DNA of 22,325 nucleotides from Octopus sinensis (taxonomy: Eukaryota): positions 1 through 22,325 of the forward strand of contig NW_021836957.1 of NCBI RefSeq assembly GCF_006345805.1, in the 5' to 3' direction. A model generated the notes under the pieces. The model made no database searches. It saw nothing but the letters and a program-made list of their open reading frames with translations, and was not told where the DNA came from. Below, in pieces: positions 243-22,194 of this stretch; position 1 is the stretch's first letter; every line of letters begins with the position of its first letter. A program made the translations under genes and the position numbers.

Positions 243-818
243 TTTAGAAGACCGGGACTGACCAGAGCAAGCCCTAGCCAGTCACGTCCTCCCCTCGCGT
301 CGACGTGGTTTGGCTCGCTCGAAGTCCGGATTTCCAGCCCGAGGTCTTCAACCAGCGTCTTCAGAGCCAAACCATGCGAGTTGGTTACCCTGAAACCAAG
401 ATCTTGATGCTTGGCATTCAGGTCCCCAACAACCATGGCCTTCGGATGCTTTTCAAAGAACTCCCGTACGTGCCAGGAGCACGCCGTAAAGTTCTTCGAG
501 TACATCCCACCTAGGTAAAATGTTAACTCGCCTATGCGAATTCTCACTTGGAGGAATTCACACAATCTACATGAACATATACCTGGACTCTGCAAGGCAA
601 GGTAGGGCTTGTAGAAGAGGCTAGTTCCTGTGCCACATATTGACCCCTGTTTCCAGGGTATGTGACGACAGTTGTAGCCATCAACTACGTACGGACCCCC
701 CTTTACCTTCGTTTCGTTGACCACCAGAATGTCCGCACTCGTGGTGGCCAACATCCTCTGAACGGCGTCCCTTTTTCCTTCCAAGGAACGCGCGTTCACC
801 GATATGATGTTGAGCATC
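243..818 (-). mobile_element. LINE family A, inverted ORF2 fragment covering the APE endonuclease domain
   Basis: Minus-strand translation MLNIISVNARSL..NETK..GDLNAKH..DWLGLALVSPGLL. Near-identical to 4911-5485. Starts at the ORF2 ATG. Confidence 0.9.
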
Positions 819-1159
819 CAAACCTTCCAAACCCGCTAGTGTGGCGAAGCCAGTGGAACCTGTGAGCCATGCTGCGTGTGGGTCGGTGCAGCCTTCGCCG
901 ACAAAGTTGACAAAGCAGGCGAAAGCTTCCGAGTCCGCTTGGTTGCCTAAGCCGGCAATGCCTTCCGAGGCGGCTAACGGCGGCACCGTCTGGCACAACC
1001 TGGGGCTGAAAAGGCGTCCTCCATACGTGGAGATGCCATTGCACTCAGCCCCTGGCGAGCGTGTACCGCAGGACAGTATTAGTCCTGCGGTGCAATTATG
1101 CGTTTCCCTATTAAAATTTTGTAGGGAGATGAATTGCAGTGTAGATGAAATGCTACACT
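819..1159 (+). mobile_element. LINE family A, ORF1 3' fragment (diverged variant)
   Basis: Homologous to ~2230-2570 (AKPVEPVSHA..KRRPPYVEMPLH..CREMNCSVDEML). Confidence 0.85.
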
Positions 1160-2624
1160 TCTGATCGTTTAATATCCACCACAACCGCACAGCATGCTGG
1201 TTCGCCACGTGTTTGCGGTTTGTCTAGTGGTACCAAACCCAGCCTAGGTAAGTCAATTAATGCCAACAGGGTGTCGTCTCCTGAGGCCGTCCCGGTGGGT
1301 ACGGCAGGAAATAAGGTTGCCCTTGAGGACGGTTGGTACACGGTGGGGAAACCCAAACGTGCGGCTGGCCGTCCAACCCCCCCTAATGTTTTAGGTACTG
1401 GGTGTGTGTCCGATCAGGCGGATGCACACCCAAAGAAGACCACTGGCGATGGGGGCAGAATTACCTTCGGTGCTGTGGCACGACTTGAGGTCCTCCCTAC
1501 AAGTGGGAAGGCCTCGGTCATAAAGATCTTAGGTACGTTAGACTCTATCCAGCCTTCAAAGCTGTATAGAGTCCTGAAGAGGGAGCCCACCCAATTCCTG
1601 CTTGGGTGGGAGAAGGAGGATGACTTCTCCAACTTCAAAGGGGAGCTGGAGAAGTCAAATCCGTTCGGTCCTGGCATGCATCGCCTTGTCAGGATCGAAC
1701 GTAAGGTAAGTAAGGTAAGTGTCCTCCTCCTCGGGGTTCCTCGGGACTTCGAGGATAATGACCTCCTAGGTCATCTGCAGCAGGAGTACCCCAGTGCCTC
1801 TGCCATTGCACGCTTCAAGCAGGGTAATCGCCCTCTTGAAGTGGTGGAGATTACACTGGGATCTCCTGCAGAAGCTGAGCGCCTGGTACTTCTTGGTACC
1901 AGGATCGGCTACATTAGGATGAGAGCTGCCTGGCCCCGCCCGAAAGCCACCCAATGCTTTCGGTGTCAGGGGTTCGGGCACATCTCCACAAAGTGCCCGG
2001 ATAAGGCGAAGTGCCTTATTTGCGGTGGGGAGCATGGTCGCAAGACGTGCCCCTCACCATCCAAGGAGAGGCAGTGTGTCAACTGTGGTAAGTTGGGACA
2101 CACTGCCAACTTCAGAGGTTGCCCCAAGTTCAAGGAGGCAACCCGAAAGGTAGGTGGGGATGTAATCCCAACAGTAAGTCGCCCGCGTCGCGCGCCCTGC
2201 GCCAAAACCTGGCAAGCAGGCGATACTGGCCAAACCTTCCAAATCCGTTTGGGTGGCGAAGACAGTGGAACCTGTGAGCCATGCTGCGTATGGGTCGGTG
2301 CAGCCTTCGCCGACAAAGTTGGCAAAGCAGGCGAAAGCTTCCGAGTCCGCTTGGTTGCCTAAGCCGGCAATGCCTTCCGAGGCGGCTAACGGCGGCACCG
2401 TCCGGCACAACGTGGGGCTGAAAAGGCGTCCTCCATACGTGGAGATGCCATTGCACTCAGCCCCTGGCGAGCGTGTACCGCAGGACAGTATTAGTCCTGC
2501 GGTGCAACTATGCGTTTCCCTATTAAAATTTTGTAGGGAGATGAATTGCAGTGTAGATGAAATGCTACACTGCAACGTTGCCGAGGCCAAGAAGATCCTT
2601 GGCGAAGAACGATGCAGCGATTAG
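1160..2624 (+). CDS. LINE ORF1p (gag-like nucleic-acid chaperone), 5'-truncated, one frameshift near 2190
   Basis: Three knuckles CFRCQGFGHISTKC, CLICGGEHGRKTC and CVNCGKLGHTANFRGC, as in I/Jockey/R1-type ORF1. The repeat copy at 6589-7860 reads through this frameshift. Confidence 0.85.
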
Positions 2625-3043
2625 GCGCGTTGCGTGCTTTCCACTTGAGGAGAGGTGCCTGGTTCCGTGTGTTCAACGCCATGGTGTTACCCGTGTTACC
2701 TATGGCGTGCACGCTTGGCACTTCTGCGAGGACAGGGAAAAGCACGTTGACGCGCTTAAGAAAGTAAGAAGACGAGCCATCCGGCTAGCCTATGGCTTAG
2801 GATGGCGTGATGAGCTCTCCAACGCCCAGGAATTGTCCCTCAAAGGCCTCCCTGAGGTCCTAGAGAAGATAATGACTGGGTGGCAGGTAAGACGGTAAGT
2901 CCTAACCTGTTTGTTGTAGAGAGGCGAGCGTGTGTGCTGGACCGAAAAGGCAGGAATGCCGAAGGTCTCCTTATGTTACCTCACTAACAGCCTCTCTAAT
3001 TAATTATTAAATAAAAAATTTCCATTTAAAAAAAAAAAAAAAA
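1160..3043 (+). mobile_element. LINE family A, ORF2-deleted derivative: ORF1, last ~95 codons of ORF2, 3' UTR, poly(A)
   Basis: ORF1 end (GAAGAAC) is joined at ~2610 to the ORF2 C-terminus (ATGCAGCGATTAGG). The 3' UTR matches 16832-16956. AATAAA at 3010-3015 and A16 at 3028-3043. Confidence 0.9.
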
Positions 3044-3081
3044 CTTGCAAATTTTGTGGATAATGGCACCTAAAGTTAGCA
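3044..3081 (+). pseudogene. H2B: Histone H2B 5' fragment (19-nt leader + MAPKVS)
   Basis: CTTGCAAATTTTGTGGATAATGGCACCTAAAGTTAGCA is identical to the reverse complement of the H2B start at 9552/15581. Confidence 0.9.
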
Positions 3082-3183
3082 AAAAATAATAAAATATGGC
3101 TAGAACAAAACAAACGGCTCGAAAATCTACTGGTGCAAAAGTACCAAGGACAGTTGTCTGCAAAATCTGCTCGCAAGCTGTCT
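3082..3183 (+). pseudogene. H3: Histone H3 5' fragment (leader + N-terminal tail to about K27)
   Basis: ATG at 3096 gives [25 protein letters not shown]. Three bases are missing relative to the copy at 8413. Confidence 0.9.
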
Positions 3184-3215
3184 GCCTAAGAAGACTATGC
3201 AGAAGTGGAGGTGTT
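3184..3215 (+). pseudogene. H4: Histone H4 internal fragment (RRLCRSGGV)
   Basis: TAAGAAGACTATGCAGAAGTGGAGGTGTT resembles local H4 ATAAGAAGACTATGTCGAAGAGGGGGTGTT ([10 protein letters not shown]). It appears to come from a different paralogue. Confidence 0.7.
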
Positions 3216-3263
3216 CCCGCCTCGCTCTCCCAGAAGGACAAGACGGTTCACTGTGCCACTACG

Positions 3264-4911
3264 ATGAATTGCCGGAGCCGTGGTTCACCGCCACGCGCTT
3301 CCGGCTATTCTAGTGGTGTCTTTAATTTTCTAGGCGAAAGCAGGAAGGAGAAGTCGAAGCCTGGACCCTCCCAGGTGGTTCAGCACTCACTGGAGACACT
3401 TCTTTCTCTGCTCCCCCTATGGCTGGTGTCGGGGAGCTGCAGGTGCAACTGGTTCTGATCGTTGGTATCCACCACAACCGCACAGCATGCTGGTTCGCCA
3501 CGTGTTTGCGGTTTGTCTAGTGGTACCAAACCCAGCCTAGGTAAGTCAATTAATGCCAACAGGGTTCGTCTCCTGAGGCCGTCCCGGTGGGTACGGCAGG
3601 AAATAAGGTTGCCCTTGAGGACGGTTGGTACACGGTGGGGAAACCCAAACGTGCGGCTGGCCGTCCAACCCCCCCTAATGTTTTAGGTACTGGGTGTGTG
3701 TCCGATCAGGCGGATGCACACCCAAAGAAGACCACTGGCGCCGGGGGCAGAATTACCTTCGGTGCTGTGGCACGACTTGAGGTCCTCCCTACAAGTGGGA
3801 AGGCCTCGGTCATAAAGATCTTAGGTACGTTAGACTCTATCCAGCCTTCAAAGCTGTATAGAGTCCTGAAGAGGGAGCCCACCCAATTCCTGCTTGGGTG
3901 GGAGAAGGAGGATGACTTCTCCAACTTCAAAGGGGAGCTGGAGAAGTCAAATCCGTTCGGTCCTGGCATGCATCGCCTTGTCAGGATCGAACGTAAGGTA
4001 AGTAAGGTAAGTTCCTCCTCCTCGGGGTTCCTCGGGACTTCGAGGATAATGACCTCCTAGGTCATCTGCAGCAGGAGTACCCCAGTGCCTCTGCCATTGC
4101 ACGCTTCAAGCAGGGTAATCGCCCTCTTGAAGTGGTGGAGATTACACTGGGATCTCCTGCAAAGCTGAGCGCCTGGTACTTCTTGGTACCAGGATCGGCT
4201 ACATTAGGATGAGAGCTGCCTGGCCCCGCCCGAAAGCCACCCAATGCTTTCGGTGTCAGGGGTTCGGGCACATCTCCACAAAGTGCCCGGATAAGGCGAA
4301 GTGCCTTATTTGCGGTGGAGAGCATGGTCGCAAGACGTGCCCCTCACCATCCAAGGAGAGGCAGTGTGTCAACTGTGGTAAGTTGGGACACACTGCCAAC
4401 TTCAGAGGTTGCCCCAAGTTCAAGGAGGCAACCCGAAAGGTAGGTGGGGATGTAATCCCAACAGTAAGTCGCCCGCGTCGCGTCGCGCGCCCTGCGCCAA
4501 AACCTGGCAAGCAGGCGATACTGGCCAAACCTTCCAATCCGTTTGGGTGGCGAAGACAGTGGAACCTGTGAGCCATGCTACGTGTGGGTCGGTGCAGCCT
4601 TCGCCGACAAAGTTGGCAAAGCAGGTGAAAGCTTCCGAGTCCGCTTGGTTGCCTAAGCCGGCAATGCCTTCTGAGGCGGCTAACGGCGGCGCCGTCCGGC
4701 ACAACCTGGGGCTGAAAAGGCGTCCTCCATACGTGGAGATGCCATTGCACCAGCCCCTGGCGAGCGTGTACCGCAGGACAGTATTAGTCCTGCGGTGCAA
4801 TTATGCGTTTCCCTATTAAAATTTTGTAGGGAGATGAATTGCAGTGTAGAGGAAATGCTACACTGCAACGTTGCCGAGGCCAAGAAGATCCTTGGCGAAG
4901 AACCGATATGA
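3264..4911 (+). CDS. LINE ORF1p, putative full length, several single-base indels
   Basis: Candidate start MNCRSRG at 3264. Contains the zinc knuckles and ends ..KKILGEEPI* (TGA 4909-4911). The start is inferred and the frame is open upstream of it. Confidence 0.7.
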
Positions 4912-6545
4912 TGCTCAACATCATATCGGTGAACGCGCGTTCCTTGGAAGGAAAAAGGGACGCCGTTCAGAGGATGTTGGCCACCACGAGTGCGGACATT
5001 CTGGTGGTCAACGAAACGAAGGTAAAGGGGGGTCCGTACGTAGTTGATGGCTACAACTGTCGTCACATACCCTGGAAACAGGGGTCAATATGTGGCACAG
5101 GAAACTAGCCTCTTCTACAAGCCCTACCTTGCCTTGCAGAGTCCAGGTATATGTTCATGTAGCTTGTGTGAATTCCTCCAAGTGAGAATTCGCATAGGCG
5201 AGTTAACATTTTACCTAGGTGGGATGTACTCGAAGAACTTTACGGCGTGCTCCTGGCACGTACGGGAGTTCTTTGAAAAGCATCCGAAGGCCATGGTTGT
5301 TGGGGACCTGAATGCCAAGCATCAAGATCTTGGTTTCAGGGTAACCAACTCGCATGGTTTGGCTCTGAAGACGCTGGTTGAAGACCTCGGGCTGGAAATC
5401 CGGACTTCGAGCGAGCCAAACCACGTCGACGCGAGGGGGACGTGACTGGCTAGGGCTTGCTCTGTGGTCAGTCCCGGTCTTCTAAATTGGGTTAGTAAAA
5501 CTATTTTATTGTCCGATATTGGGAGCGACCATCTGCCTCTATTGCACGAACTCCGTGAGCAGTTCCTCAAAGGGTCCCAGGATACTTTGACCTCCGGGTG
5601 GGTTCCTGGGCTAACCTGGAGAGTTTCATGGCCAGCAGGTTGCCCTCACTTCTGGTGGGGAATACCTGCGCCAACATACGTGAGTTGGAGGCGCTTGATA
5701 ATGGAATCAATGCTGCCCTGACTGATTACATGCGAGATAATTTCAAACAAAACTCAGTGCAGGGTCAGGCACATTCCACGCTCCCTCACCGGATCTTAAA
5801 TAAAATTAGGTTCAAGCGCCGGCTATCCAGACTACGGGACAAATGCGTTTACGAGGAGAACCGTGTTTGGTTTCGTGGCTGGATTAGCCGGCTTCAGAGG
5901 GAGATCCGAAGAGAAATCCGCGAACTCGAAAGTTCGCGGTGGGAGAGGGCCTGCCGAAGGGTGGACCCTCGCTTTCCGGACTTCTGGAAGCAGTTGAAGA
6001 GCCTGTCGGGGAGAAGGGGGCTAAGTCAGTGCGCCTTAAACGCTCTGATGGAACCCTCGCTTCGGACCCGGTTGAGGTGGTTGAAATACTTTCACCCCAT
6101 CTCAATGGCATCTCGGGAACTGACGGAAGTCAGTTCGTAGAGACATCGTCCTTTGATACTGTCCAGCAGATATTGTCGTGGGACAAGCGCTGCCAGCTGG
6201 GCATATCAAGGAACGATGCAGGCGAAATTACTGAAGCGGAGATTCTGGCAGCAATCTCCCGAAGTAAGAACACCGCGGCGGGTTTGGATCGGATCCCGAT
6301 GGCCATCTTTAAGAAGGCCCCGCCGCGGTTAATCACTGCACTAAAGGTTTTATTTAACGGGAGCTTGCGACTTGGGATAATTCCCTCCAGGTGGAAAGTG
6401 GCTGAGGTAATCCTTATCGGAAAGCCCGGGAAGCCACATGATGTCCCCGGGGGATATAGGCCCATTTCCTTGCTCCCCGCGGTATCTAAAATCCTAGAAA
6501 GAATTATGCACCAAAGGCTCCTGGAGGAGCTGATGGTTGCAGACG
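4908..6545 (+). CDS. LINE ORF2p, endonuclease + linker + N-terminal RT, truncated and with indels
   Basis: APE motifs VNARSL, NETK, GDLNAKH, SDHLP, then KNTAAGLDRIP, WKVAEVILIGKPGK, YRPISLL. Confidence 0.9.
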
Positions 6546-8360
6546 TGGTACCAAACCCAGCCTAGGTAAGTCAATTAATGCCAACAGGGTGTCGTCTCCT
6601 GAGGCCGTCCCGGTGGGTACGGCAGGAAATAAGGTTGCCCTTGAGGACGGTTGGTACACGGTGGGGAAACCCAAACGTGCGGCTGGCCGTCCAACCCCCC
6701 CTAATGTTTTAGGTACTGGGTGTGTGTCCGATCAGGCGGATGCACACCCAAAGAAGACCACTGGCGATGGGGGCAGAATTACCTTCGGTGCTGTGGCACG
6801 ACTTGAGGTCCTCCCTACAAGTGGGAAGGCCTCGGTCATAAAGATCTTAGGTACGTTAGACTCTATCCAGCCTTCAAAGCTGTATAGAGTCCTGAAGAGG
6901 GAGCCCACCCAATTCCTGCTTGGGTGGGAGAAGGAGGATGACTTCTCCAACTTCAAAGGGGAGCTGGAGAAGTCAAATCCGTTCGGTCCTGGCATGCATC
7001 GCCTTGTCAGGATCGAACGTAAGGTAAGTAAGGTAAGTGTCCTCCTCCTCGGGGTTCCTCGGGACTTCGAGGATAATGACCTCCTAGGTCATCTGCAGCA
7101 GGAGTACCCCAGTGCCTCTGCCATTGCACGCTTCAAGCAGGGTAATCGCCCTCTTGAAGTGGTGGAGATTACACTGGGATCTCCTGCAGAAGCTGAGCGC
7201 CTGGTACTTCTTGGTACCAGGATCGGCTACATTAGGATGAGAGCTGCCTGGCCCCGCCCGAAAGCCACCCAATGCTTTCGGTGTCAGGGGTTCGGGCACA
7301 TCTCCACAAAGTGCCCGGATAAGGCGAAGTGCCTTATTTGCGGTGGGGAGCATGGTCGCAAGACGTGCCCCTCACCATCCAAGGAGAGGCAGTGTGTCAA
7401 CTGTGGTAAGTTGGGACACACTGCCAACTTCAGAGGTTGCCCCAAGTTCAAGGAGGCAACCCGAAAGGTAGGTGGGGATGTAATCCCAACAGTAAGTCGC
7501 CCGCGTCGCGCGCCCTGCGCAAAACCTGGCAAGCAGGCGATACTGGCCAAACCTTCCAAATCCGTTTGGGTGGCGAAGACAGTGGAACCTGTGAGCCATG
7601 CTGCGTATGGGTCGGTGCAGCCTTCGCCGACAAAGTTGGCAAAGCAGGCGAAAGCTTCCGAGTCCGCTTGGTTGCCTAAGCCGGCAATGCCTTCCGAGGC
7701 GGCTAACGGCGGCACCGTCCGGCACAACGTGGGGCTGAAAAGGCGTCCTCCATACGTGGAGATGCCATTGCACTCAGCCCCTGGCGAGCGTGTACCGCAG
7801 GACAGTATTAGTCCTGCGGTGCAACTATGCGTTTCCCTATTAAATTTTGTAGGGAGATGAATTGCAGTGTAGATGAAATGCTACACTGCAACGTTGCCGA
7901 GGCCAAGAAGATCCTTGGCGAAGAACGATGCAGCGATTAGGCGCGTTGCGTGCTTTCCACTTGAGGAGAGGTGCCTGGTTCCGTGTGTTCAACGCCATGG
8001 TGTTACCCGTGTTAACCTATGGCGTGCACGCTTGGCACTTCTGCGAGGACAGGGAAAAGCACGTTGACGCGCTTAAGAAAGTAAGAACGAGCCATCCGGC
8101 TAGCCTATGGCTTAGGATGGCGTGATGAGCTCTCCAACGCCCAGGAATTGTCCCTCAAAGGCCTCCCTGAGGTCCTAGAGAAGATAATGACTGGGTGGCA
8201 GGTAAGACGGTAAGTCCTAACCTGTGGTTGTGTAGAGAGGCGAGCGTGTGTGCTGGACCGAAAAGGCAGGAATGCCGAAGGTCTCCTTATGTTACCTCTC
8301 ACTAACAGCCTCTCTAATTAATTATTAAATAAAATTTCCATTTAAAAAAAAAAAAAAAAA
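6546..8360 (+). mobile_element. Second copy of the ORF2-deleted family A derivative
   Basis: ORF1 frame 6589-7860, deletion junction at ~7925, 3' UTR, A17 at 8344-8360. Confidence 0.9.
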
Positions 8361-8535
8361 CTTGCAAATTTTGTGGATAATGGCACCTAAAGTTAGCAAA
8401 AAATAATAAAATATGGCTAGAACAAAACAAACGGCTCGAAAATCTACTGGTGCAAAAGTACCAAGGAAACAGTTGTCTGCAAAATCTGCTCGCAAGCTGT
8501 CTGCACTAAGAAGACTATGCAGAAGTGGAGGTGTT
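8361..8535 (+). pseudogene. Second copy of the H2B/H3/H4 fragment chimera
   Basis: H2B ATG 8380 (MAPKVSKK*). H3 ATG 8413 reads [41 protein letters not shown]. Confidence 0.9.
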
Positions 8536-9266
8536 CCCGCCTCGCTCTCCCAGAAGGACAAGACGGTTCAGTGTGCCACTACGATGAATTGCCGGAGCCG
8601 TGGTTCACCGCCACGCGCTTCCGGCTATTCTAGTGGTGTCTTTAATTTTCTAGGCGAAAGCAGGAAGGAGAAGTCGAAGCCTGGACCCTCCCAGGTGGGT
8701 TCAGCACTCACTGGAGACACTTCTTTCTCTGCTCCCCTATGGCTGGTGTCGGGGAGCTGCAGGTGCAACTGGTTCTGATCGTTTGGTATCCACCACAACC
8801 GCACAGCATGCTGGTTCGCCACGTGTTTGCGGTTTGTCTAGTGTACCAAACCCAGCCTAGGTAAGTCAATTAATGCCAACAGGGTGTCGTCTCCTGAGGC
8901 CGTCCCGGTGGGTACGGCAGGAAATAAGGTTGCCCTTGGACGGCGTTGGTACACGGTGGGGAAACCCAAACGTGCGGCTGGCCGTCCAACCCCCCCTAAT
9001 GTTTTAGGTACTGGGTGTGTGTCCGATCAGGCGGATGCACACCCAAAGAAGACCACTGGCGCCGGGGGCAGAATTACCTTCGGTGCTGTGGCACGACTTG
9101 AGGTCCTCCCTACAAGTGGGAAGGCCTCGGTCATAAAGATCTTAGGTACGTTAGACTCTATCCAGCCTTCAAAGCTGTATAGAGTCCTGAAGAGGGAGCC
9201 CACCCAATTCCTGCTTGGGTGGGAGAAGGAGGATGACTTCTCCAACTTCAAAGGGGAGCTGGAGAA
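8536..9266 (+). mobile_element. LINE family A 5' part, truncated in ORF1
   Basis: Matches 3216-3945. Joins antisense H2B at a shared AGAA (9263-9266). Confidence 0.9.
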
Positions 9267-9552
9267 TCAGACGAACTGCAGTCTGTATTTCACGTGAGGT
9301 AATGGTAGCCTTCGAATTCTGATAGACTAGATTTGATGCCTCGGTTTTTATTTTGTCATAAACATCAAATGTGAAACTGTCCATAGCCATCATAGCCTTC
9401 TTTGACATCCCAAGTTGATTATGTACTGTCTTTAAAATTTTCATAAGATATATGGAAAAAGTTTTCCTTTTCTTTTTTTTTTGTAGCAACAGAACATTTT
9501 TGCTTTTTATAGGAGCTCTTTTTTGTCCCTTTGTGCTAACTTTAGGTGCCAT
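9263..9552 (-). pseudogene. H2B: Histone H2B, 3'-truncated at the LINE junction
   Basis: [53 protein letters not shown]. The last ~25 codons are missing compared with 15217-15581. Confidence 0.9.
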
Positions 9553-10214: not shown

Positions 10215-10478
10215 ATAATTCTCTAAATAAACATAATTATAAACAGATGCAAAAAAATAAAATATTAGAAAAAAATAAATTTTTCAAACGATATAACTCT
10301 AATTTATTGTATAAATATACTTTTTGTTATTTCAACAAGATTTCTTACCAATTAAAAAAGCAATCGTAGTATTTCACCGTCGTTTGGTAGCTAGTTAGTA
10401 TATTTATGAAATTGCTAATTTTTATCTGGTTAATTTGTAAGGAATATCAATGTATTTTATTAAAAAAATTATGTATAA

Positions 10479-10786
10479 TTATCCACCAAATCCGTAAATT
10501 GTCCTACCTTGACGTTTCAAGGCATTAACAACCATTGCGATAACAGTTTTTCTTTTGGCATGTTCAGTATAGGAAATACAATCACGAACAGTTTGCTCAA
10601 TAAAAATCTTAAGGACAGAACGTGTCTCCTCGTAAATTTTTCCAGAAATTCTTCGAACACCCCCCCTCTTCGACATAGTCTTCTTATTGCTGGCTTAGTA
10701 ATTCCTTGTATATTGTCAATTAATATCTTTCGAAATCGTTTTGCACCACTCTTTCCTCCTTTGCCACCTTTACCACGTCCAGACAT
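10479..10786 (-). CDS. H4: Histone H4 (indels here; intact copy at 16505-16813)
   Basis: [51 protein letters not shown]. One indel lies in a C-homopolymer near 10660. Confidence 0.92.
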
Positions 10787-10941
10787 TGAAAAATTCTCTA
10801 AATGAACACTATTTTCAACCTATGCACAAAAAGTATCATTGCCAAATTTTTTCAAAAGGACCATTCCGAAAAAAATTTTCAACTAAATTTCGGAATGCCA
10901 TTTTTTTTATTATGTAAATAAAAAATAGTTAGCAGAGTATA
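10787..10941. promoter_or_regulatory. 155-bp bidirectional H4/H2A promoter with three motif copies
   Basis: AAAAAGTATCATTGCCAAATTTT (~10828), CCATTCCGAAAAAAATTTT (10861), and an inverted AAATTTCGGAATGCCATTTTTT (~10886). Initiator-like TCATTT on the minus strand near 10803. Confidence 0.7.
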
Positions 10942-13793: not shown

Positions 13794-14833
13794 TACTGGA
13801 ACAATTCCTGGACCCTGACTCTGTCAATATGATAAGAGTACTACTATCGAACACAAAGCTCAAGGTGCGGGTCGGCACGGCGTTTTCCCGTGAATTCACG
13901 TGCAACCTCGGTACCCCTCAGGGAGACGCCCTCTCGCCGTTGCTATTCGTGATCTATCTGGAGACGGCACTACGAGACCTTCGAAAATTCTATGCTGGCA
14001 ATATCGTCGAAATTGTATATGCAGATGACGTCGACTTCGTGTCAGACTACAAATCGTCCTTACTTCGACTCCTTGAAGTGGCACCTGCTGAGCTGAACAG
14101 ATGGTTCCTTAAAATGAACGTTGGAAAAAACGACATCGTTGAAATCATGAGGATGGAGAGCAGCTCAAGTGAAGCCTGGCGCAAAACGAACAAACTCGGT
14201 TCTCTACTTGGGGACGGCCATGAATTGTCAGAAGAAAGGCTCTCGCTGGGCCACGATGAACAAGATAAAGAAAGAGTGGATCGGCAAACGACGACTCTGT
14301 ACGTCACTTCGTCTGAGGATGTATGAAGCCTTGTCAAACCAATCCTGACATATAATTCGGCGACCTGGGGAATGTCTAGTACTGAACAACGTGGACTCGA
14401 TTCTTTTCACCGCAGGCAACTTAGATCCCTACTGGGATTGAACTGGCCTATAAGAATCAACCAGGAATCGCTATACAATAGATGCAGAACTGGCCCTCTG
14501 AGTGTGGAAATCGTCAATATGCGGTGGAGGTTATTTGGCCATATTCTACGAATGGACATGCTTGCCCCAGCTAATATAGCAATGGAGGGCTACTTCCTGA
14601 AAGAGGGATCGAGCTTCCGTGGACGTCCACGTGTTACGCTGCCGGAAACACTTGACGGAGACCTGAAATGTGTGAAGAAAAGGCTAAGGAGTGGTGAGGA
14701 TCTGGACGAGCTGAGGAAAGTCGCTCACGACAGAGGAGGTTGGAGGAGGCTGGTTCAAAAGATTGTTTTTAATGCTGCACGAGTAAAATTATAACTAATA
14801 TGATTCTACGTATGTTGCAAATAATAATAATAA
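13794..14833 (+). mobile_element. 5'-truncated RTE-like LINE with (AAT)n tail and 14-bp target-site duplication
   Basis: RT motifs GTPQGDALSPLLF and YADDVDF, C-terminal RWRLFGHILRM..GRPRVTL. AAT repeats at ~14819-14836. TAAATATTTTTAAA occurs at both 13780-13793 and 14834-14847. Confidence 0.9.
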
Positions 14834-16504: not shown

Positions 16505-16813
16505 TTATCCACCAAATCCGTAAATTGTCCTACCTTGACGTTTCAAGGCATTAACAACGTCCATTGCGATAACAGTTTTTCTTTTGGCATGTTCAGTATA
16601 GGAAATACAATCACGAACAGTTTGCTCAATAAAAATCTTAAGGACAGAACGTGTCTCCTCGTAAATTTTTCCAGAAATTCTTCGAACACCCCCTCTTCGA
16701 CATAGTCTTCTTATTGCTGGCTTAGTAATTCCTTGTATATTGTCAATTAATATCTTTCGAAATCGTTTTGCACCACTCTTTCCTCCTTTGCCACCTTTAC
16801 CACGTCCAGACAT
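16505..16813 (-). CDS. H4: Histone H4, intact ORF (102 codons), upstream promoter replaced by a LINE
   Basis: Uninterrupted [20 protein letters not shown]. Confidence 0.96.
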
Positions 16814-16956
16814 TGAAAAATTCTCTAAATGGAAATTTTTTATTTAATAATTAATTAGAGAGGCTGTTAGTGAGGTAACATAAGGAGACCTTCGGCATTC
16901 CTGCCTTTTCGGCCCAGCACACACGCTCGCCTCTCTACACAACCACAGGTTAGGAC

Positions 16957-19564
16957 TTACCGTCTTACCTGCCACCCAGTCATTATCTTCTCTAGGACCT
17001 CAGGGAGGCCTTTGAGGGACAATTCCTGGGCGTTGGAGAGCTCATCACGCCATCCTAAGCCATAGGCTAGCCGGATGGCTCGTCTTCTTACTTTCTTAAG
17101 CGCGTCAACGTACTTCTCCCTGTCCTCGCAGAAGTGCCAAGCGTGCACGCCATAGGTTAACACGGGTAACACCATGGCGTTGAACACACGGAACCAGGCA
17201 CCTCTCCTCAAGTGGAAAGCACGCAACGCGCCTAATCGCTGCATTGCACGCATTTTAGTGCGTGCAATGTGATCATCGAACTTACCTGACTGCTTGAAGA
17301 CCACGCCCAAGTAGGTCGTCCGATCAACTATAGCGATTGCTGACCCGTCCAGCGATAACCTAGGGATAAAATTAGTGTAACCCCTCGTCCTTTTACAGAC
17401 TTTAAGGACACTGCACTTGTCCGCACACATCTTTAGACCCCTACTCCCACACCAGTGTACAAGTTCATCCACAGCAACCTGTAGCCTACGACACGCACAC
17501 TCAGGTTTCATCGACTGATCCCAGAGGATAATGTCGTCTGCATAGATCACCATTTCAGTACGAGCATTGACTGGCATAGGCGCAGAGGCCATAAAGATAT
17601 TAAACAGTGTGGGACTCAGCACAGAACCCTGAGGGACCCCGCGAAGGACTGTTCCGACTTTAGAAAAGACCCCTGGTGTCGCACGACCGATGACCGCGAG
17701 ATTCGAGGAACCCCACAGCCAGCGCCTTAGACACGGAGAAACCCCACACGTGGCGAGGGAACTCCGCAGGCCGTCGTGCCACACCGAGTCGAAGGCCTTT
17801 TCTATGTCAAGACTAACTAACATACCAAACTCACTTTTCTGGAGGGCGTTTTTCATTTCGGAAGACACCTTCCACAAGCAGTCTCCACATGAACGACCCT
17901 CCCTGAAGCCCCATTGGAACTCCGGGAGGGCGTCAACCACCGTCAGCTCCTCCAGGAGCCTTCGGTGCATGATTTTTTCTAGGATTTTAGATATAGCGGG
18001 AAGCAAGGAAATGGGCCTATATCCCCCGGGGACATCATGAGGCTTCCCAGGTTTTCCAATGAGGATTACCTCAGCCACTTTCCACCTGGAAGGAATCATC
18101 CCAAGTCGCAAGCTCCCGCTAAACAAAACCTGTAAGGCCGTGATCAACAACGGCGGGGCCTTTTTGAAGATGGACATAGGGATCCGATCTAGCCCCGCCG
18201 CGGTGTTCTTACTTCGGGAGATCGCTTCCAGGATCTCCCTTTCGGAAACTTCGCCTGCATCGCCCCTTGTTATGTCCAGCTGGCAGCGCTTGTCCCAAGA
18301 CAATACCTCCTGGATAGTAACAAAAGACGACGTCTCTACGAACTGACTTCCGTCAGTTCCCGAGATGTTGTTGAGGTGGGTTGAAAATATATCAGCCACC
18401 TCAACCGGGTCCGAGGCGAGGGTTCCATCAGAGCGCTTAAGGCGCACTGACTTTGCCTCCCCTCTCCCCGACAGGCTCTTCAGTTGTTTCCAGAAGTCCG
18501 GAAAGCGCGGGTCCACTCTTTGACAGGCCCGCTCCCACCGTGAACTTTCGTGTTCACGGATTTCCCTCCGGATCTCCCTCTGAAGCCGGCTGATCCAGCC
18601 GCGAAACCAGACACGGTTCTCCTGGTACACGCATTTGTCCCGCAGTCTGGACAGCCGGCGCTTGAATCTAATTTTATTTAGCACCCGGTACGGGAGCGTG
18701 GAATGTGCCTGGCCCTGTACTGGGTTCTGTTTGAAATTATCTCGCATTAATCAGACAGGGCAGCATTGATTCCATTATCTAACGCCTCCAACTCTCGTAT
18801 GTTGGCGCAGGTTTTCCCCACCAGAAGTGAGGGCAACCTGCTGGCCATGAAACTCTCCAGGTTAGCCAGGAACCCACCCGGAGGTCAAAGTATCCTGGGA
18901 CCCTTGAGGAACTGGCTCACGAAGTTCGTGCAATAGAGGCAGATGGTCGCTCCCAATATCGGGCAATAAAATAGTTTTACTAACCCAATTTAGAGAGACC
19001 GGGACTGACCAGAGCAAGCCCTAGCCAGTCACGTCCTCCCCTAGTGTCGACGTGGTTTGGCTCGCTCGAAGTCCGGATTTCCAGCCCGAGGTCTTCAACC
19101 AGCGTCTTCAGAGCCAAACCATGCGAGTTGGTTACCCTGAAACCAAGATCTTGATGCTTGGCATTCAGGTCCCCAACAACCATGGCTTCGGATGCTTTTC
19201 AAAGAACTCCCGTACGTGCCAGGAGCACGCCGTAAAGTTCTTCGAGTACATCCCACCTAGGTAAAATGTTAACTCGCCTATGCGAATTCTCACTTGGAGG
19301 AATTCACACAAGCTACATGAACATATACCTGGACTCTGCAAGGCAAGGTAGGGCTTGTAGAAGAGGCTAGTTCCTGTGCCACATATTGACCCCTGTTTCC
19401 AGGGTATGTGACGACAGTTGTAGCCATCAACTACGTACGGACCCCCCCTTACCTTCGTTTCGTTGACCACCAGAATGTCCGCACTCGTGGTGGCAACATC
19501 CTCTGAACGGCGTCCCTTTTTCCTTCCAGGAACGCGCGTTCACCGATATGATGTTGAGCATCAT
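16957..19564 (-). CDS. LINE ORF2p (APE endonuclease + reverse transcriptase, no RNase H seen)
   Basis: 596 codons are open (16957-18747) with QWGFREGRS, SLDIEKAFDSVWH, GVPQGSVLSPTLFNIF, YADD and YLGV. The endonuclease part has single-base indels. Confidence 0.93.
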
Positions 19565-20098
19565 ATCGGTTCTTCGCCAAGGATCTTCTTGGCCTCGGCA
19601 ACGTTGCAGTGTAGCATTTCCTCTACACTGCAATTCATCTCCCTACAAAATTTTAATAGGGAAACGCATAATTGCACCGCAGGACTAATACTGTCCTGCG
19701 GTACACGCTCGCCAGGGGCTGAGTGCAATGGCATCTCCACGTATGGAGGACGCCTTTTCAGCCCCAGGTTGTGCCGGACGGCGCCGCCGTTAGCCGCCTC
19801 AGAAGGCATTGCCGGCTTAGGCAACCAAGCGGACTCGGAAGCTTTCACCTGCTTTGCCAACTTTGTCGGCGAAGGCTGCACCGACCCACACGTAGCATGG
19901 CTCACAGGTTCCACTGTCTTCGCCACCCAAACGGATTTGGAAGGTTTGGCCAGTATCGCCTGCTTGCCAGGTTTTGGCGCAGGGCGCGCGACGCGACGCG
20001 GGCGACTTACTGTTGGGATTACATCCCCACCTACCTTTCGGGTTGCCTCCTTGAACTTGGGGCAACCTCTGAAGTTGGCAGTGTGTCCCAACTTACCA
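19561..20098 (-). CDS. LINE ORF1p C-terminal part
   Basis: GKLGHTANFRGCPKFKEA..KKILGEEPI*, open frame. Confidence 0.88.
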
Positions 20099-21200
20099 TA
20101 GATTCCGAGCACATTGGTAATGAGCTAAGATTGTCTTCCAACTCTTTTTCCATATCAAACAAAGCTGAATCAGATAGATTTGTATCCGGATTGACTTCTT
20201 GTATTCTTTGAGACTATCAGCAAATATGTTCGGGATTTCTTCATGAGATGCAGGGGATCCATCTTGTTTTAGCAGTTTAGGTATAGTTTTCTCAGACGTC
20301 GAGGTTAATTTCGAGTAGACCTTCCAAAAATTTGGACTTCCTTATGTAGCTTTTTGCACTCAGTATTCCATTTTTTATCCTTCGCCACCTTCGCCGATTT
20401 TCTTATTTCTTCCGTAATGGTGAAGATTTCACTTTCCAAAACGGACCGGTCACGAAAATCTGCGCAGCGCCGGAGTTTGTTCCTTAGACATTGTTTTTTC
20501 CTTAGTAGGATTTCAACATTCATGTTTGGCATGTGAGTTTTCCTATTGTTTGAGACGATTTTTGTAGAATATGTTTCCAGATAAGACTTTATGTATCCAA
20601 TAAGGGAATTGCTAGACTTCTCGAGGTCCTCAGATGAAGAATTTTCGTCAAGTTTAGGAGCGAAATTGCTCAGATAAAGTGTAAAACATTTTCGGTAGTG
20701 TTCCCAGTTTATAGTCGAGAGGTTATATCGTATAAAAGTTGGTTTACCCTTAAAGGTCCAAGGTTGAGTTTGTATTAAAATTGGTAGATGGTCACTTCAA
20801 TATCATTTAAGGTGTACGGTTGTTCCATAAATTGAAGAGTAGACATAGAGACCAATGCTACGCCCAAATAGTCCCACCCTCCTGGTGAGTAATGATTTGG
20901 GGTTTTTGATGTGATGACCGAGAAACTGAGAGATTCTGAAAGCTTCTTAAGAATGATGCCATCCCTGTTGGTTCTCAGACAGCCAAAAGATGTGCATTTG
21001 GCATTTAGATCCCCGAGGAGTATTGACAAATGATTGTGTTTATCGGCAAAAAAGTCCTTGATAAGCGATGAATAATTGGAAAGGGATTTTGAGTATGTTC
21101 CTAAAAAAAAACATTTGTATGTTGGAATGGAATGGAAAGTTTTATTGTAAGCAAATCAGAGACTTAGTGTAAAGGTTGGACGAGGTTAAACGAGACGACT
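20099..21200 (-). mobile_element. LINE family B (more AT-rich relative of A): degenerate endonuclease + linker, truncated at both ends
   Basis: LLGDLNAK..TPNHYSPGGWDYLGVALVS..(frameshift)SDHLP, then KCLRNKLRR..EEIRKSAKVAKDKKWNTEC, collinear with family A. The 5' boundary is approximate. Confidence 0.8.
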
Positions 21201-21289
21201 GCAAGGACAGTCGAGCTCTACCGAGATTCGTCCTAAGAGAGTATACGAGCCGTCCTTTGATTAGAGTCACTCTCTGATTGAGTTACATG

Positions 21290-21607
21290 AGCCTGAATGC
21301 TTCTGAGCCTGTATGCTTCTGAGCCTGTATGCTTCTGAGCTTTCTGGGCTTCTGAGCCTGTATGCTTCTGAGCCTGTATGCTTCTGAGCTTTCTGGGCTT
21401 CTGAGCCTGTATGCTTCTGAGCTTTCTGGGCTTCTGAGCCTGTATGCTTCTGAGCCTGTATGCTTCTGAGCTTTCTGGGCTTCTGAGCCTGTATGCTTCT
21501 GAGCTTTCTGGGCTTCTGAGCCTGTATGCTTCTGAGCCTGTATGCTTCTGAGCCTGTATGCTTCTGAGCTTTCTGGGCTTCTGAGCTTTCTGGGCTTCTG
21601 AGCTTTC
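21290..21607. repeat. Two-unit minisatellite (16-bp A, 17-bp B)
   Basis: A=GCTTCTGAGCCTGTAT, B=GCTTCTGAGCTTTCTGG. Order from 21299: AABAABABAABABAAABB plus a partial unit. Confidence 0.95.
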
Positions 21608-21866
21608 TTTCCTGACGTTTAGTCAGCAAGAGGCGCTAGACTGCACCTTCTCGAAGGTCTACAGTGCCAGAGAAGAAGAAGAAAAGGAAGAAAAGAGGAG
21701 GTGCGTGGGTGCCACCTTCTGCTCACTTCGAAGGCTCTGGACTTAGTAAAATTACTTAGTTTCTTTTTTTAATAAAGCTAGTTAGTATATTTATGAAATT
21801 GCTAATTTTTATCTGGTTAATTTGTAAGGAATATCAATGTATTTTATTAAAAAAATTATGTATAAT

Positions 21867-22175
21867 TTATCCACCAAATCCGTAAATGTCCTACCTTGAC
21901 GTTTCAAGGCATTAACAACGTCCATTGCGATAACAGTTTTTTCTTTTGGCATGCTCAGTGTAAGAAATACAATCACGAACAGTTTGCTCAATAAAAATCT
22001 TAAGGACAGAACGTGTCTCCTCGTAAATTTTTCCAGAAATTCTTCGAACACCCCCTCTTCGACATAGTCTTCTTATTGCTGGCTTAGTAATTCCTTGTAT
22101 ATTGTCAATTAATATCTTTCGAAATCGTTTTGCACCACTCTTTCCTCCTTTGCCACCTTTACCACGTCCAGACAT
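21867..22175 (-). CDS. H4: Histone H4, third copy (slightly different paralogue, 1-2 indels)
   Basis: Same protein start. Substitutions near 21955-21965 and leader ATTTAGAGAATTTTTCCTA. Similarity to the other copies spans 21776-22194 only. Confidence 0.88.
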
Positions 22176-22194
22176 TAGGAAAAATTCTCTAAAT

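Follow-up and report, generated by a model that had tools for sequence, protein, structure and literature searches.

The locus and its retroelements

The stretch of DNA analyzed here (hereafter, the window) comprises 22,325 nucleotides of contig NW_021836957.1 from Octopus sinensis (O. sinensis; assembly GCF_006345805.1) and contains damaged copies of two families of long interspersed nuclear elements (LINEs), which we refer to as families A and B. Both encode an endonuclease (EN) of the apurinic/apyrimidinic endonuclease (APE) type, and both have a glycine at the position that is normally occupied by the aspartate that orients the catalytic histidine (D205 of human L1; D283 of APE1).

Family A comprises two open reading frames (ORFs). 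ORF1 (1145-2362, plus strand, with repeats at ~3453-4907 and 6545-7929) encodes a protein of 405 amino acids with weak matches to the CCHC zinc knuckle, whilst the second ORF (ORF2) encodes an N-terminal APE-type EN and a reverse transcriptase (RT). An EN followed by an RT with a YADD motif in one element, together with a separate ORF1, is the order of a LINE and was seen in copy A3 of the window, and likewise at a second O. sinensis locus (L001). The family A set has a GC content of ~54% and lies in AT-rich surroundings. Its reconstructed EN consensus is 92% identical to that of O. sinensis LOC115231178 (P0001).

Three copies of the family A EN are present. Copy A1 lies on the plus strand, where its frameshifted EN domain (4908-5560), delimited from translations, the three-copy alignment, and matches to PF14529 and PF03372, is followed by a linker and a partial RT that extends to 6537. 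Along the domain are found the V-N-E-T motif with the catalytic Glu (5007-5018; equivalent to L1 E43), the G-D-L-N motif (5302-5313; L1 D145 and N147), the Asn codon AAC of a P-N-H motif (5419-5421; L1 T192), the Asp codon GAC (5444-5446; L1 S202), the Gly codon GGG three residues further on (5453-5455; L1 D205 and APE1 D283), and the S-D-H motif (5524-5532), whose His codon at 5530-5532 corresponds to L1 H230. Copy A2 (243-818, minus strand) is an EN fragment that ends just past its Gly codon at 272-274, and has its Asn codon at 308-310. Copy A3 (16826-20098, minus strand) is the fullest of the three; it is 5'-truncated within ORF1 and retains its 3' end. Its EN (~18910-19564) has the Gly codon at 19019-19021, the Asn codon at 19055-19057, and the S-D-H motif at 18938-18951, and its RT ORF (16957-18747) is open over 596 amino acids, matches RVT_1 at 1e-36, and includes the YADD motif. 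The three ENs are 98-99% identical to each other and every copy is frameshifted. Given that they are near-identical pseudogenes, we treated them as a single observation and looked to other families for independent support.

Family B, an older, AT-rich relative, falls within the P0005 family of O. sinensis, to which it is 79% identical across 77 residues. What remains is the decayed C-terminal half of the EN (20782-21014, minus strand), with GDLNAK at 20997-21014, P-N-H at 20892-20900, the GGC Gly codon at 20862-20864, and SDHLP, past a frameshift, at 20782-20796.

The endonuclease fold and the glycine at the aspartate position

The family A consensus matched both PF14529 (39.6 bits; cut-off 27.4) and PF03372 (35.8 bits; cut-off 24.5), and family B matched PF14529 with 42.4 bits. 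An AlphaFold2 (AF2) model of the EN had a mean predicted local distance difference test score of 87 and a predicted template modelling (TM) score of 0.87, and a Foldseek search with this model returned L1-EN (TM 0.79) and TRAS1-EN (TM 0.77) as best matches (E = 1e-12). By profile, predicted fold, and catalytic core, the domain is predicted to be an APE-type LINE endonuclease with the four-layer alpha/beta sandwich of the endonuclease/exonuclease/phosphatase (EEP) superfamily. The element as a whole appears to be a Jockey-like APE-type LINE, with membership of the Jockey clade taken from the names that the sources give to its relatives. A single-sequence phmmer search of the PDB with the EN consensus gave one spurious match only, and a scan of NCBIfam gave weak matches to ExoIII and to group II intron RTs that were uninformative.

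The original prediction had drawn attention to the glycine from the sequence of the window alone, and most of what it described was borne out. The Gly codons (GGG in the three copies of family A and GGC in family B) are where it had placed them, the RT with an intact YADD was recovered as the open ORF of copy A3, and the other EN motifs (SVNARS, VNETK, MYSK with its Tyr, GDLN, and GSDH) were all found. Gly183, in the numbering of the family A consensus, precedes His208 of the S-D-H motif by 25 residues. Family B reads GGWDYLGVALVS, that is, G-G-W-D-Y-L-G-V-A-L-V-S, with Gly at the Asp site. One detail needed amendment. Copies A2 and A3 do read R-D-W-L-G-L-A-L-V-S, but copy A1, which was said to read the same, runs D-W-L-G-L-A-L-W before its frame is lost to a 2-bp insertion after CTG, and a further 2-bp deletion lies just upstream, such that the D-W-L-G-L-A-L-V-S reading of A1 requires frame correction.

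The Gly occupies the L1 D205 position in these two diverged families according to profile alignment, gap-free alignment with close relatives, the AF2 model, and the structural matches of that model. When the PDB was searched with a HMMER profile built from six EN sequences of the octopus clade that is described below, the column of the Gly was filled by Asp in TRAS1 (SRVDVTF), in an ExoIII homologue (IDYF), and in Arabidopsis ARP (LDYF). The nearest relatives align without gaps in this region, with D-x-L-G opposite D-x-L-D. In the AF2 model, Gly183 begins the core strand 183-187, and the preceding hairpin bridge is made up of residues 172-173 and 179-180.

A clade of octopus LINEs that lacks the aspartate

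Our earlier word-indexed homologue searches returned 4 and 10 matches. The wider clade emerged only when 1.84 billion representative proteins were searched exhaustively with HMMER, which gave 697 matches. All five of the closest relatives of family A come from O. sinensis, and none of them has the Asp. P0001-3 have Gly at this site, as do P0005 (GWDYLGLALVS), P0006 (GEDCIGVFLVS), and P0009 (RADRLGLFLCS), whilst P0007 (GWDNLCVALST) has Cys. Two more copies, found in the flanks of O. sinensis loci, have Ser (GEDNLSLCICS) and Gly (GDRLGLFIMP). The proteins of O. sinensis come from gene models that are truncated (359-466 amino acids) and span the EN and the linker. In all, at least six O. sinensis families have Gly, Cys, or Ser at the Asp site in ORFs that are uninterrupted. 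The identity of these families to family A is 35-43%, and a neighbour-joining (NJ) tree of the EN places them in a single group. In 105 other EN domains (Jockey-, X-element-, and BS-like, and mostly from arthropods), the same column is Asp in 98%. The missing Asp is a feature of the clade and not a product of decay.

We also considered the possibility that pseudogene decay or a shift in the alignment had placed Gly in this column, and rejected it, since the uninterrupted ORFs of many families agree and there are no indels relative to the D-x-L-D relatives. A scan of metagenome loci with the octopus profile gave a single weak match, and the site lay outside it. Within the literature searched, itself a limited set, no natural LINE lineage without this Asp has been reported.

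A threonine-to-asparagine change accompanies the loss

Comparison of the same domains indicates that the loss of Asp goes specifically with a change in the "PT" motif, whose Thr (L1 T192) is replaced by Asn. The original prediction had overlooked it. The Thr is kept in 100% of the 105 other ENs, while the site is Asn in all members of the octopus clade (in the context P/R/L/I-N-H), as in copy A1, where the AAC codon co-varies with the Gly. In our first alignment, 8/8 of the Asn-bearing domains were without the Asp, and the eighth of these, P0040, was not from an octopus. The Asn is fixed in the octopus clade, while the Asp site varies among the small residues Gly, Cys, and Ser. Asn together with a non-Asp residue may serve as a two-residue signature by which the octopus LINE clade can be defined.

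In L1, T192, D205, and H230 form a hydrogen-bond chain, and mutation of these residues destabilises the protein (Repanas et al., PMC1950540). The two sites that change together are those of direct hydrogen-bond partners in the relay that places the catalytic His. The Thr-held, His-orienting Asp is the conserved EEP feature that is absent from the octopus clade. In APE1, the counterpart of the Asp-His pair is D283-H309, and the equivalent of the Thr is, we presume, T265.

Sequences that keep the Thr and are without the Asp do occur (P0048, Gly; P0109, Ser; P0090, Glu; P0154, Asn; P0076, Tyr). Such sequences occur as scattered single cases, among them some plainly damaged copies.

As a separate observation, a third column tracks the state of the Asn and Gly sites. 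EN residue 56 (the W of I-P-W, at ~5073-5075 of the window) is Trp in all ENs of the octopus clade, Asn in 7/7 ENs of the P0040 clade described next, and Asp, as part of a "DR" motif, in 75% of the 105 others.

A second clade with asparagine

P0040 derives from a 5.3 kb metagenome scaffold (ENA WANG22-1...scaffold_15822) that encodes a 466-amino-acid ORF1 and a complete EN-RT ORF2 of 912 amino acids. It is one of seven families (P0040 and P0159-P0164) at 41-72% identity, five of which have complete ORF2s of ~900 amino acids. The Thr site is Asn in 7/7. The Asp site is Gln in five (P0040, P0159, P0160, P0163, and P0164), Gly in P0161, and Asp in P0162, and the residue three positions upstream (-3) is acidic throughout, either Glu or Asp. 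In bootstrapped NJ trees of the RT, the P0040 clade was monophyletic in 100/100 replicates, and a grouping with octopus family A was recovered in 0/100. As the two clades lie apart on this tree, the change of Thr to Asn with loss of Asp appears to have arisen either twice, or once at a very deep node with many lineages retaining both Thr and Asp in between.

The P0040 element itself (locus L004, 510-4645) is a complete metagenomic LINE in which the 466-amino-acid ORF1 overlaps the 912-amino-acid ORF2 by 4 bp, and which has the Asn and Gln variant of the active site.

Selection on the endonuclease and the marks of insertion

We compared the EN domain of the window family A consensus with that of L001 and counted 36.5 synonymous and 22.5 non-synonymous differences. 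These correspond to synonymous (dS) and non-synonymous (dN) divergences of 0.29 and 0.046, respectively, and to a dN/dS of 0.16 (Fisher p = 4e-11 against neutrality), which indicates that the EN evolved under purifying selection; since both copies have decayed in the meantime, 0.16 is an upper bound of dN/dS on the active lineage. Across six sequences of the octopus clade, 40 columns are invariant, among them E36, Y107, D133, N135, D207, and H208, and N9 is kept in 4/4 of those that extend to the N-terminus. Such preservation of metal- and phosphate-binding residues would not be expected of an EN that is kept merely as a scaffold, or that is not needed. An endonuclease-independent element would be expected to have an EN that is absent or decaying, with relaxed catalytic residues, and the low dN/dS and the invariance of the catalytic residues outside the relay do not match this profile.

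The 3' terminus is kept in five of the six family A copies that we examined, namely three copies in the window together with those at L001 and L003, whilst the points of 5' truncation vary among copies. Endonuclease-independent L1 insertions, by comparison, are often 3'-truncated. An A16 tail is found past the 3' end of an internally deleted family A derivative. The head-to-tail arrangement that had been described as concatemers is present in the window; at least part of it, however, reflects a 2.7-kb segmental duplication, as 1227-3949 and 6545-9269 are 99% identical.

One further feature of the comparison with L001 concerns the history of the element. Between 16831-20097 (minus strand) of the window and 9468-12740 of L001, dS of the EN (0.29) is far above that of the RT (0.034), which suggests a mosaic or recombinant element in which the EN was swapped between subfamilies.

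Other features of the window

Two regions (1159-3028 and 6545-8344) are internally deleted derivatives of family A, in which ORF1 runs directly into the terminal ~417 bp of family A. The junction lies exactly at the ORF1/ORF2 boundary, with the A16 tail downstream. A segment of ~245 bp recurs five times (1-242, 1181-1425, 3474-3717, 6545-6743, and 8795-9038) with 87-90% identity between copies, compared to 98-99% for the surrounding family A units, and may be a repeat of greater age, either internal to the element or at its 5' end.

A divergent histone H4-like ORF of 102 amino acids is located at 16505-16813 (minus strand), with repeats at 10389-10803 and 21776-22194; one copy is open and two are frameshifted, and the ORF starts ~12 bp past the 3' terminus of the family A copy on the minus strand. 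The repeat that holds this ORF is 0.4-1.5 kb long and recurs with a spacing of ~5.4-6 kb. A short tandem repeat (21288-21603), which on the minus strand translates into KHTGSEAQKAQ-like units, adjoins the upstream side of the 5'-truncated family B EN. Finally, a 165-amino-acid ORF in the AT-rich middle of the window (13829-14326, plus strand) matches the C-terminal portion of RVT_1 (2e-14) and is a piece of another retroelement.

Discussion

The original prediction had offered two ways to understand the glycine, namely a lineage that mobilises without a nick of its own, or one with an altered active site. Our analysis favours the second. With modest confidence, and on grounds of sequence comparison, we lean towards a working endonuclease whose Thr-Asp-His relay was remodelled with Asn at its centre. 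Standard enzymes of the fold have a Thr that holds the Asp, and the Asp in turn holds and polarises the catalytic His. In the octopus clade, where Thr is replaced by Asn and Asp by a small residue (Gly, Cys, or Ser), the longer side chain of Asn could reach into the space vacated by the Asp and orient the His, either directly or via a water molecule, and the nearby acidic residue at -3 (the L1 S202 position) may assist. The His of the octopus clade would then be held by Asn, possibly through water, or by the neighbouring Asp180, and in the P0040 clade a neutral Asn-Gln-His chain seems likely. We take Asn, rather than the Asp at -3, to be the probable compensating residue. An element of this kind would presumably retain its nicking activity and use it on its target, with insertion through the usual target-primed reverse transcription.

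Several observations weigh against this interpretation. D205A and H230A are the standard endonuclease-dead controls of L1, where both residues are described as critical to the function of the EN (PMC4837594). In APE1, the D283G variant has reduced function (PMC3679070). These effects argue that a single change at the Asp site is costly, and a paired change is then what would be expected in lineages that survive. On simple geometry, the Asn may fall short of the His unless helped by a water molecule or by a shift of the backbone. HMMER aligned the Asn to a column adjacent to the TRAS1 Thr, owing to the different lengths of the hairpin loops, and the equivalence of Asn and Thr rests on the closer relatives. 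Among the family A copies that we examined, none has a complete full-length ORF2. The independence of the two Asn-bearing clades depends on NJ distance trees at high divergence. Lastly, we looked for target-site duplications (TSDs) at the junctions of L001, L002, and L003, and found none at the two usable O. sinensis copies, with junctions defined by BLAST and copies that are 7-14% diverged.

We weighed three alternatives to an Asn-based relay. The first of these, which we regard as unlikely, is that the upstream acidic residue (Asp180, at the L1 S202 position) has taken over the orientation of the His, such that the catalytic Asp has in effect moved and the Asn is secondary. The original prediction had itself raised the upstream Asp as the possible true catalytic residue. 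This Asp is invariant across the octopus families, the P0040 clade has Glu or Asp at -3 throughout, and the sporadic Asp-less sequences P0090 and P0109 also have a -3 Asp. However, among the ~130 aligned domains in which the canonical Asp is retained, 71 also have Asp at -3. The upstream Asp is common in canonical relatives and not specific to the loss. It aligns with the Ser of the TRAS1 SRVD, which we take to be L1 S202, and S202 in L1 is a moderately conserved, non-catalytic surface residue that anchors a beta-hairpin and whose replacement by Ala leaves ~30% activity (PMC1950540). In the AF2 model, residues 179-180 are likewise part of the hairpin bridge, and not of the core strand.

A second alternative, which we consider improbable, is that the His is unassisted. 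The Asp would be dispensable in this scaffold, with the Asn either stabilising or a neutral hitch-hiker, and the nuclease would be weaker, but sufficient. That APE1 D283G has reduced function, and is not null, fits such a reading (PMC3679070), as do the variability of the Asp site within the two clades (Gly, Cys, Ser, Gln, and Asp) and the occasional sequences that keep Thr and have Gly, Ser, Glu, or Asn at that site. It does not sit well with the invariance of Asn in both clades as against 100% Thr elsewhere, nor with the distribution of the Asp-less state, in that the clades that have diversified all carry Asn, whereas the Thr-bearing Asp-less sequences are singletons and possibly dead copies.

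The third alternative, which was the main inference of the original prediction, is that the EN is crippled and the element inserts at pre-existing nicks, breaks, or chromosome ends in the manner of endonuclease-deficient L1. It could draw on the use of D205A (with H230A) as the endonuclease-dead control of L1 (PMC4837594), on the lack of TSDs at two O. sinensis copies, and on the scrambled head-to-tail arrangements in the window, but the TSD test covers only two old copies with approximate junctions, the 2.7-kb repeat is a segmental duplication, and mobilisation without a nick of its own is argued against by a dN/dS of 0.16 in the EN, by catalytic residues (including N9 where the N-terminus is present) that are invariant over families only 35-43% identical to family A, by the recurrence of the Thr-to-Asn change in an apparently independent clade, by the retention of complete EN and RT ORFs in the P0040 clade at 41-72% identity, and by varied 5' truncation with complete 3' ends, so that we judge it the least probable of the three.

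To return to the relay rebuilt around Asn, a more far-reaching version of it would be that two seemingly independent LINE lineages have swapped the near-universal Thr-Asp-His relay of the EEP fold for an Asn-based one and remain active with changed properties. We put this forward tentatively, as possible though rather doubtful. If true, the changed properties might include a shift in the pH or metal optimum, a slower release of product, or another choice of target, and T192N would be expected to restore activity to D205G, the classic dead mutant of human L1.

Conservation of the Thr-Asp-His relay extends from bacterial ExoIII to human APE1, and L1 D205 is the textbook "endonuclease-dead" position. 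Natural lineages that have proliferated in the absence of the Asp, each time with the Thr changed to Asn, would offer a testable case of active-site rewiring, and they yield a testable prediction for L1, for APE1, and for engineered retrotransposon nucleases. Automated annotation that calls an EN "inactive" from this one residue would score these families wrongly. In octopus genomics, the two-residue signature would define a cephalopod LINE clade.

Amongst systems that have been characterised, human L1-EN (PDB 1VYB) is the best structural match. The equivalents of N14, E43, Y115, D145, N147, D229, and H230 are all present in the octopus EN, the spacing of 25 residues between the Asp site and the His is the same, and in both elements the EN is N-terminal in an EN-RT ORF2. 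Unlike L1-EN, the octopus EN has Asn at the equivalent of T192, Gly, Cys, or Ser at that of D205, and Asp at that of S202. Sequence identity to L1 is ~15%, and the octopus ORF1 is of the CCHC zinc-knuckle type, and not of the L1 type. TRAS1 EN (PDB 1WDU) was the only LINE EN found by the profile search of the PDB (E = 5e-4) and is the next-best structural match. It differs in that it keeps both the Thr and the Asp (VPTF ... SRVDVTF), is specific for telomere repeats, and has a longer hairpin loop.

The nearest relatives in sequence are the ENs of the Jockey clade, as named by their sources (Drosophila jockey, X-element, BS, and arthropod relatives). The D-x-L-(D) context, GDLNAKH, P-T/N-H, and GSDHLP are shared with these, as is an organisation into a CCHC-type ORF1 and an EN-RT ORF2. 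Where the Jockey-like relatives have P-T-H ... D-x-L-D, the octopus clade has P-N-H ... D-x-L-G/C/S, and it is further set apart by W56, by GTGTS in place of GGGVA, and by YSK in place of YxPP. The P0040 clade resembles the octopus clade in having the Thr-to-Asn change with loss of Asp (to Gln or Gly), an acidic residue at -3, and a complete EN-RT ORF2. It differs in that the Asp site is mostly Gln, in that P0162 keeps Asp beside Asn, and in that it is not the sister of the octopus clade on the RT tree. In the APE1 D283G and L1 D205A/G variants, the same residue has been replaced, twice by Gly. However, these are single changes in a Thr background that reduce or abolish function, whereas in the octopus the replacement is fixed in lineages that have proliferated, and is accompanied by the change of Thr to Asn.

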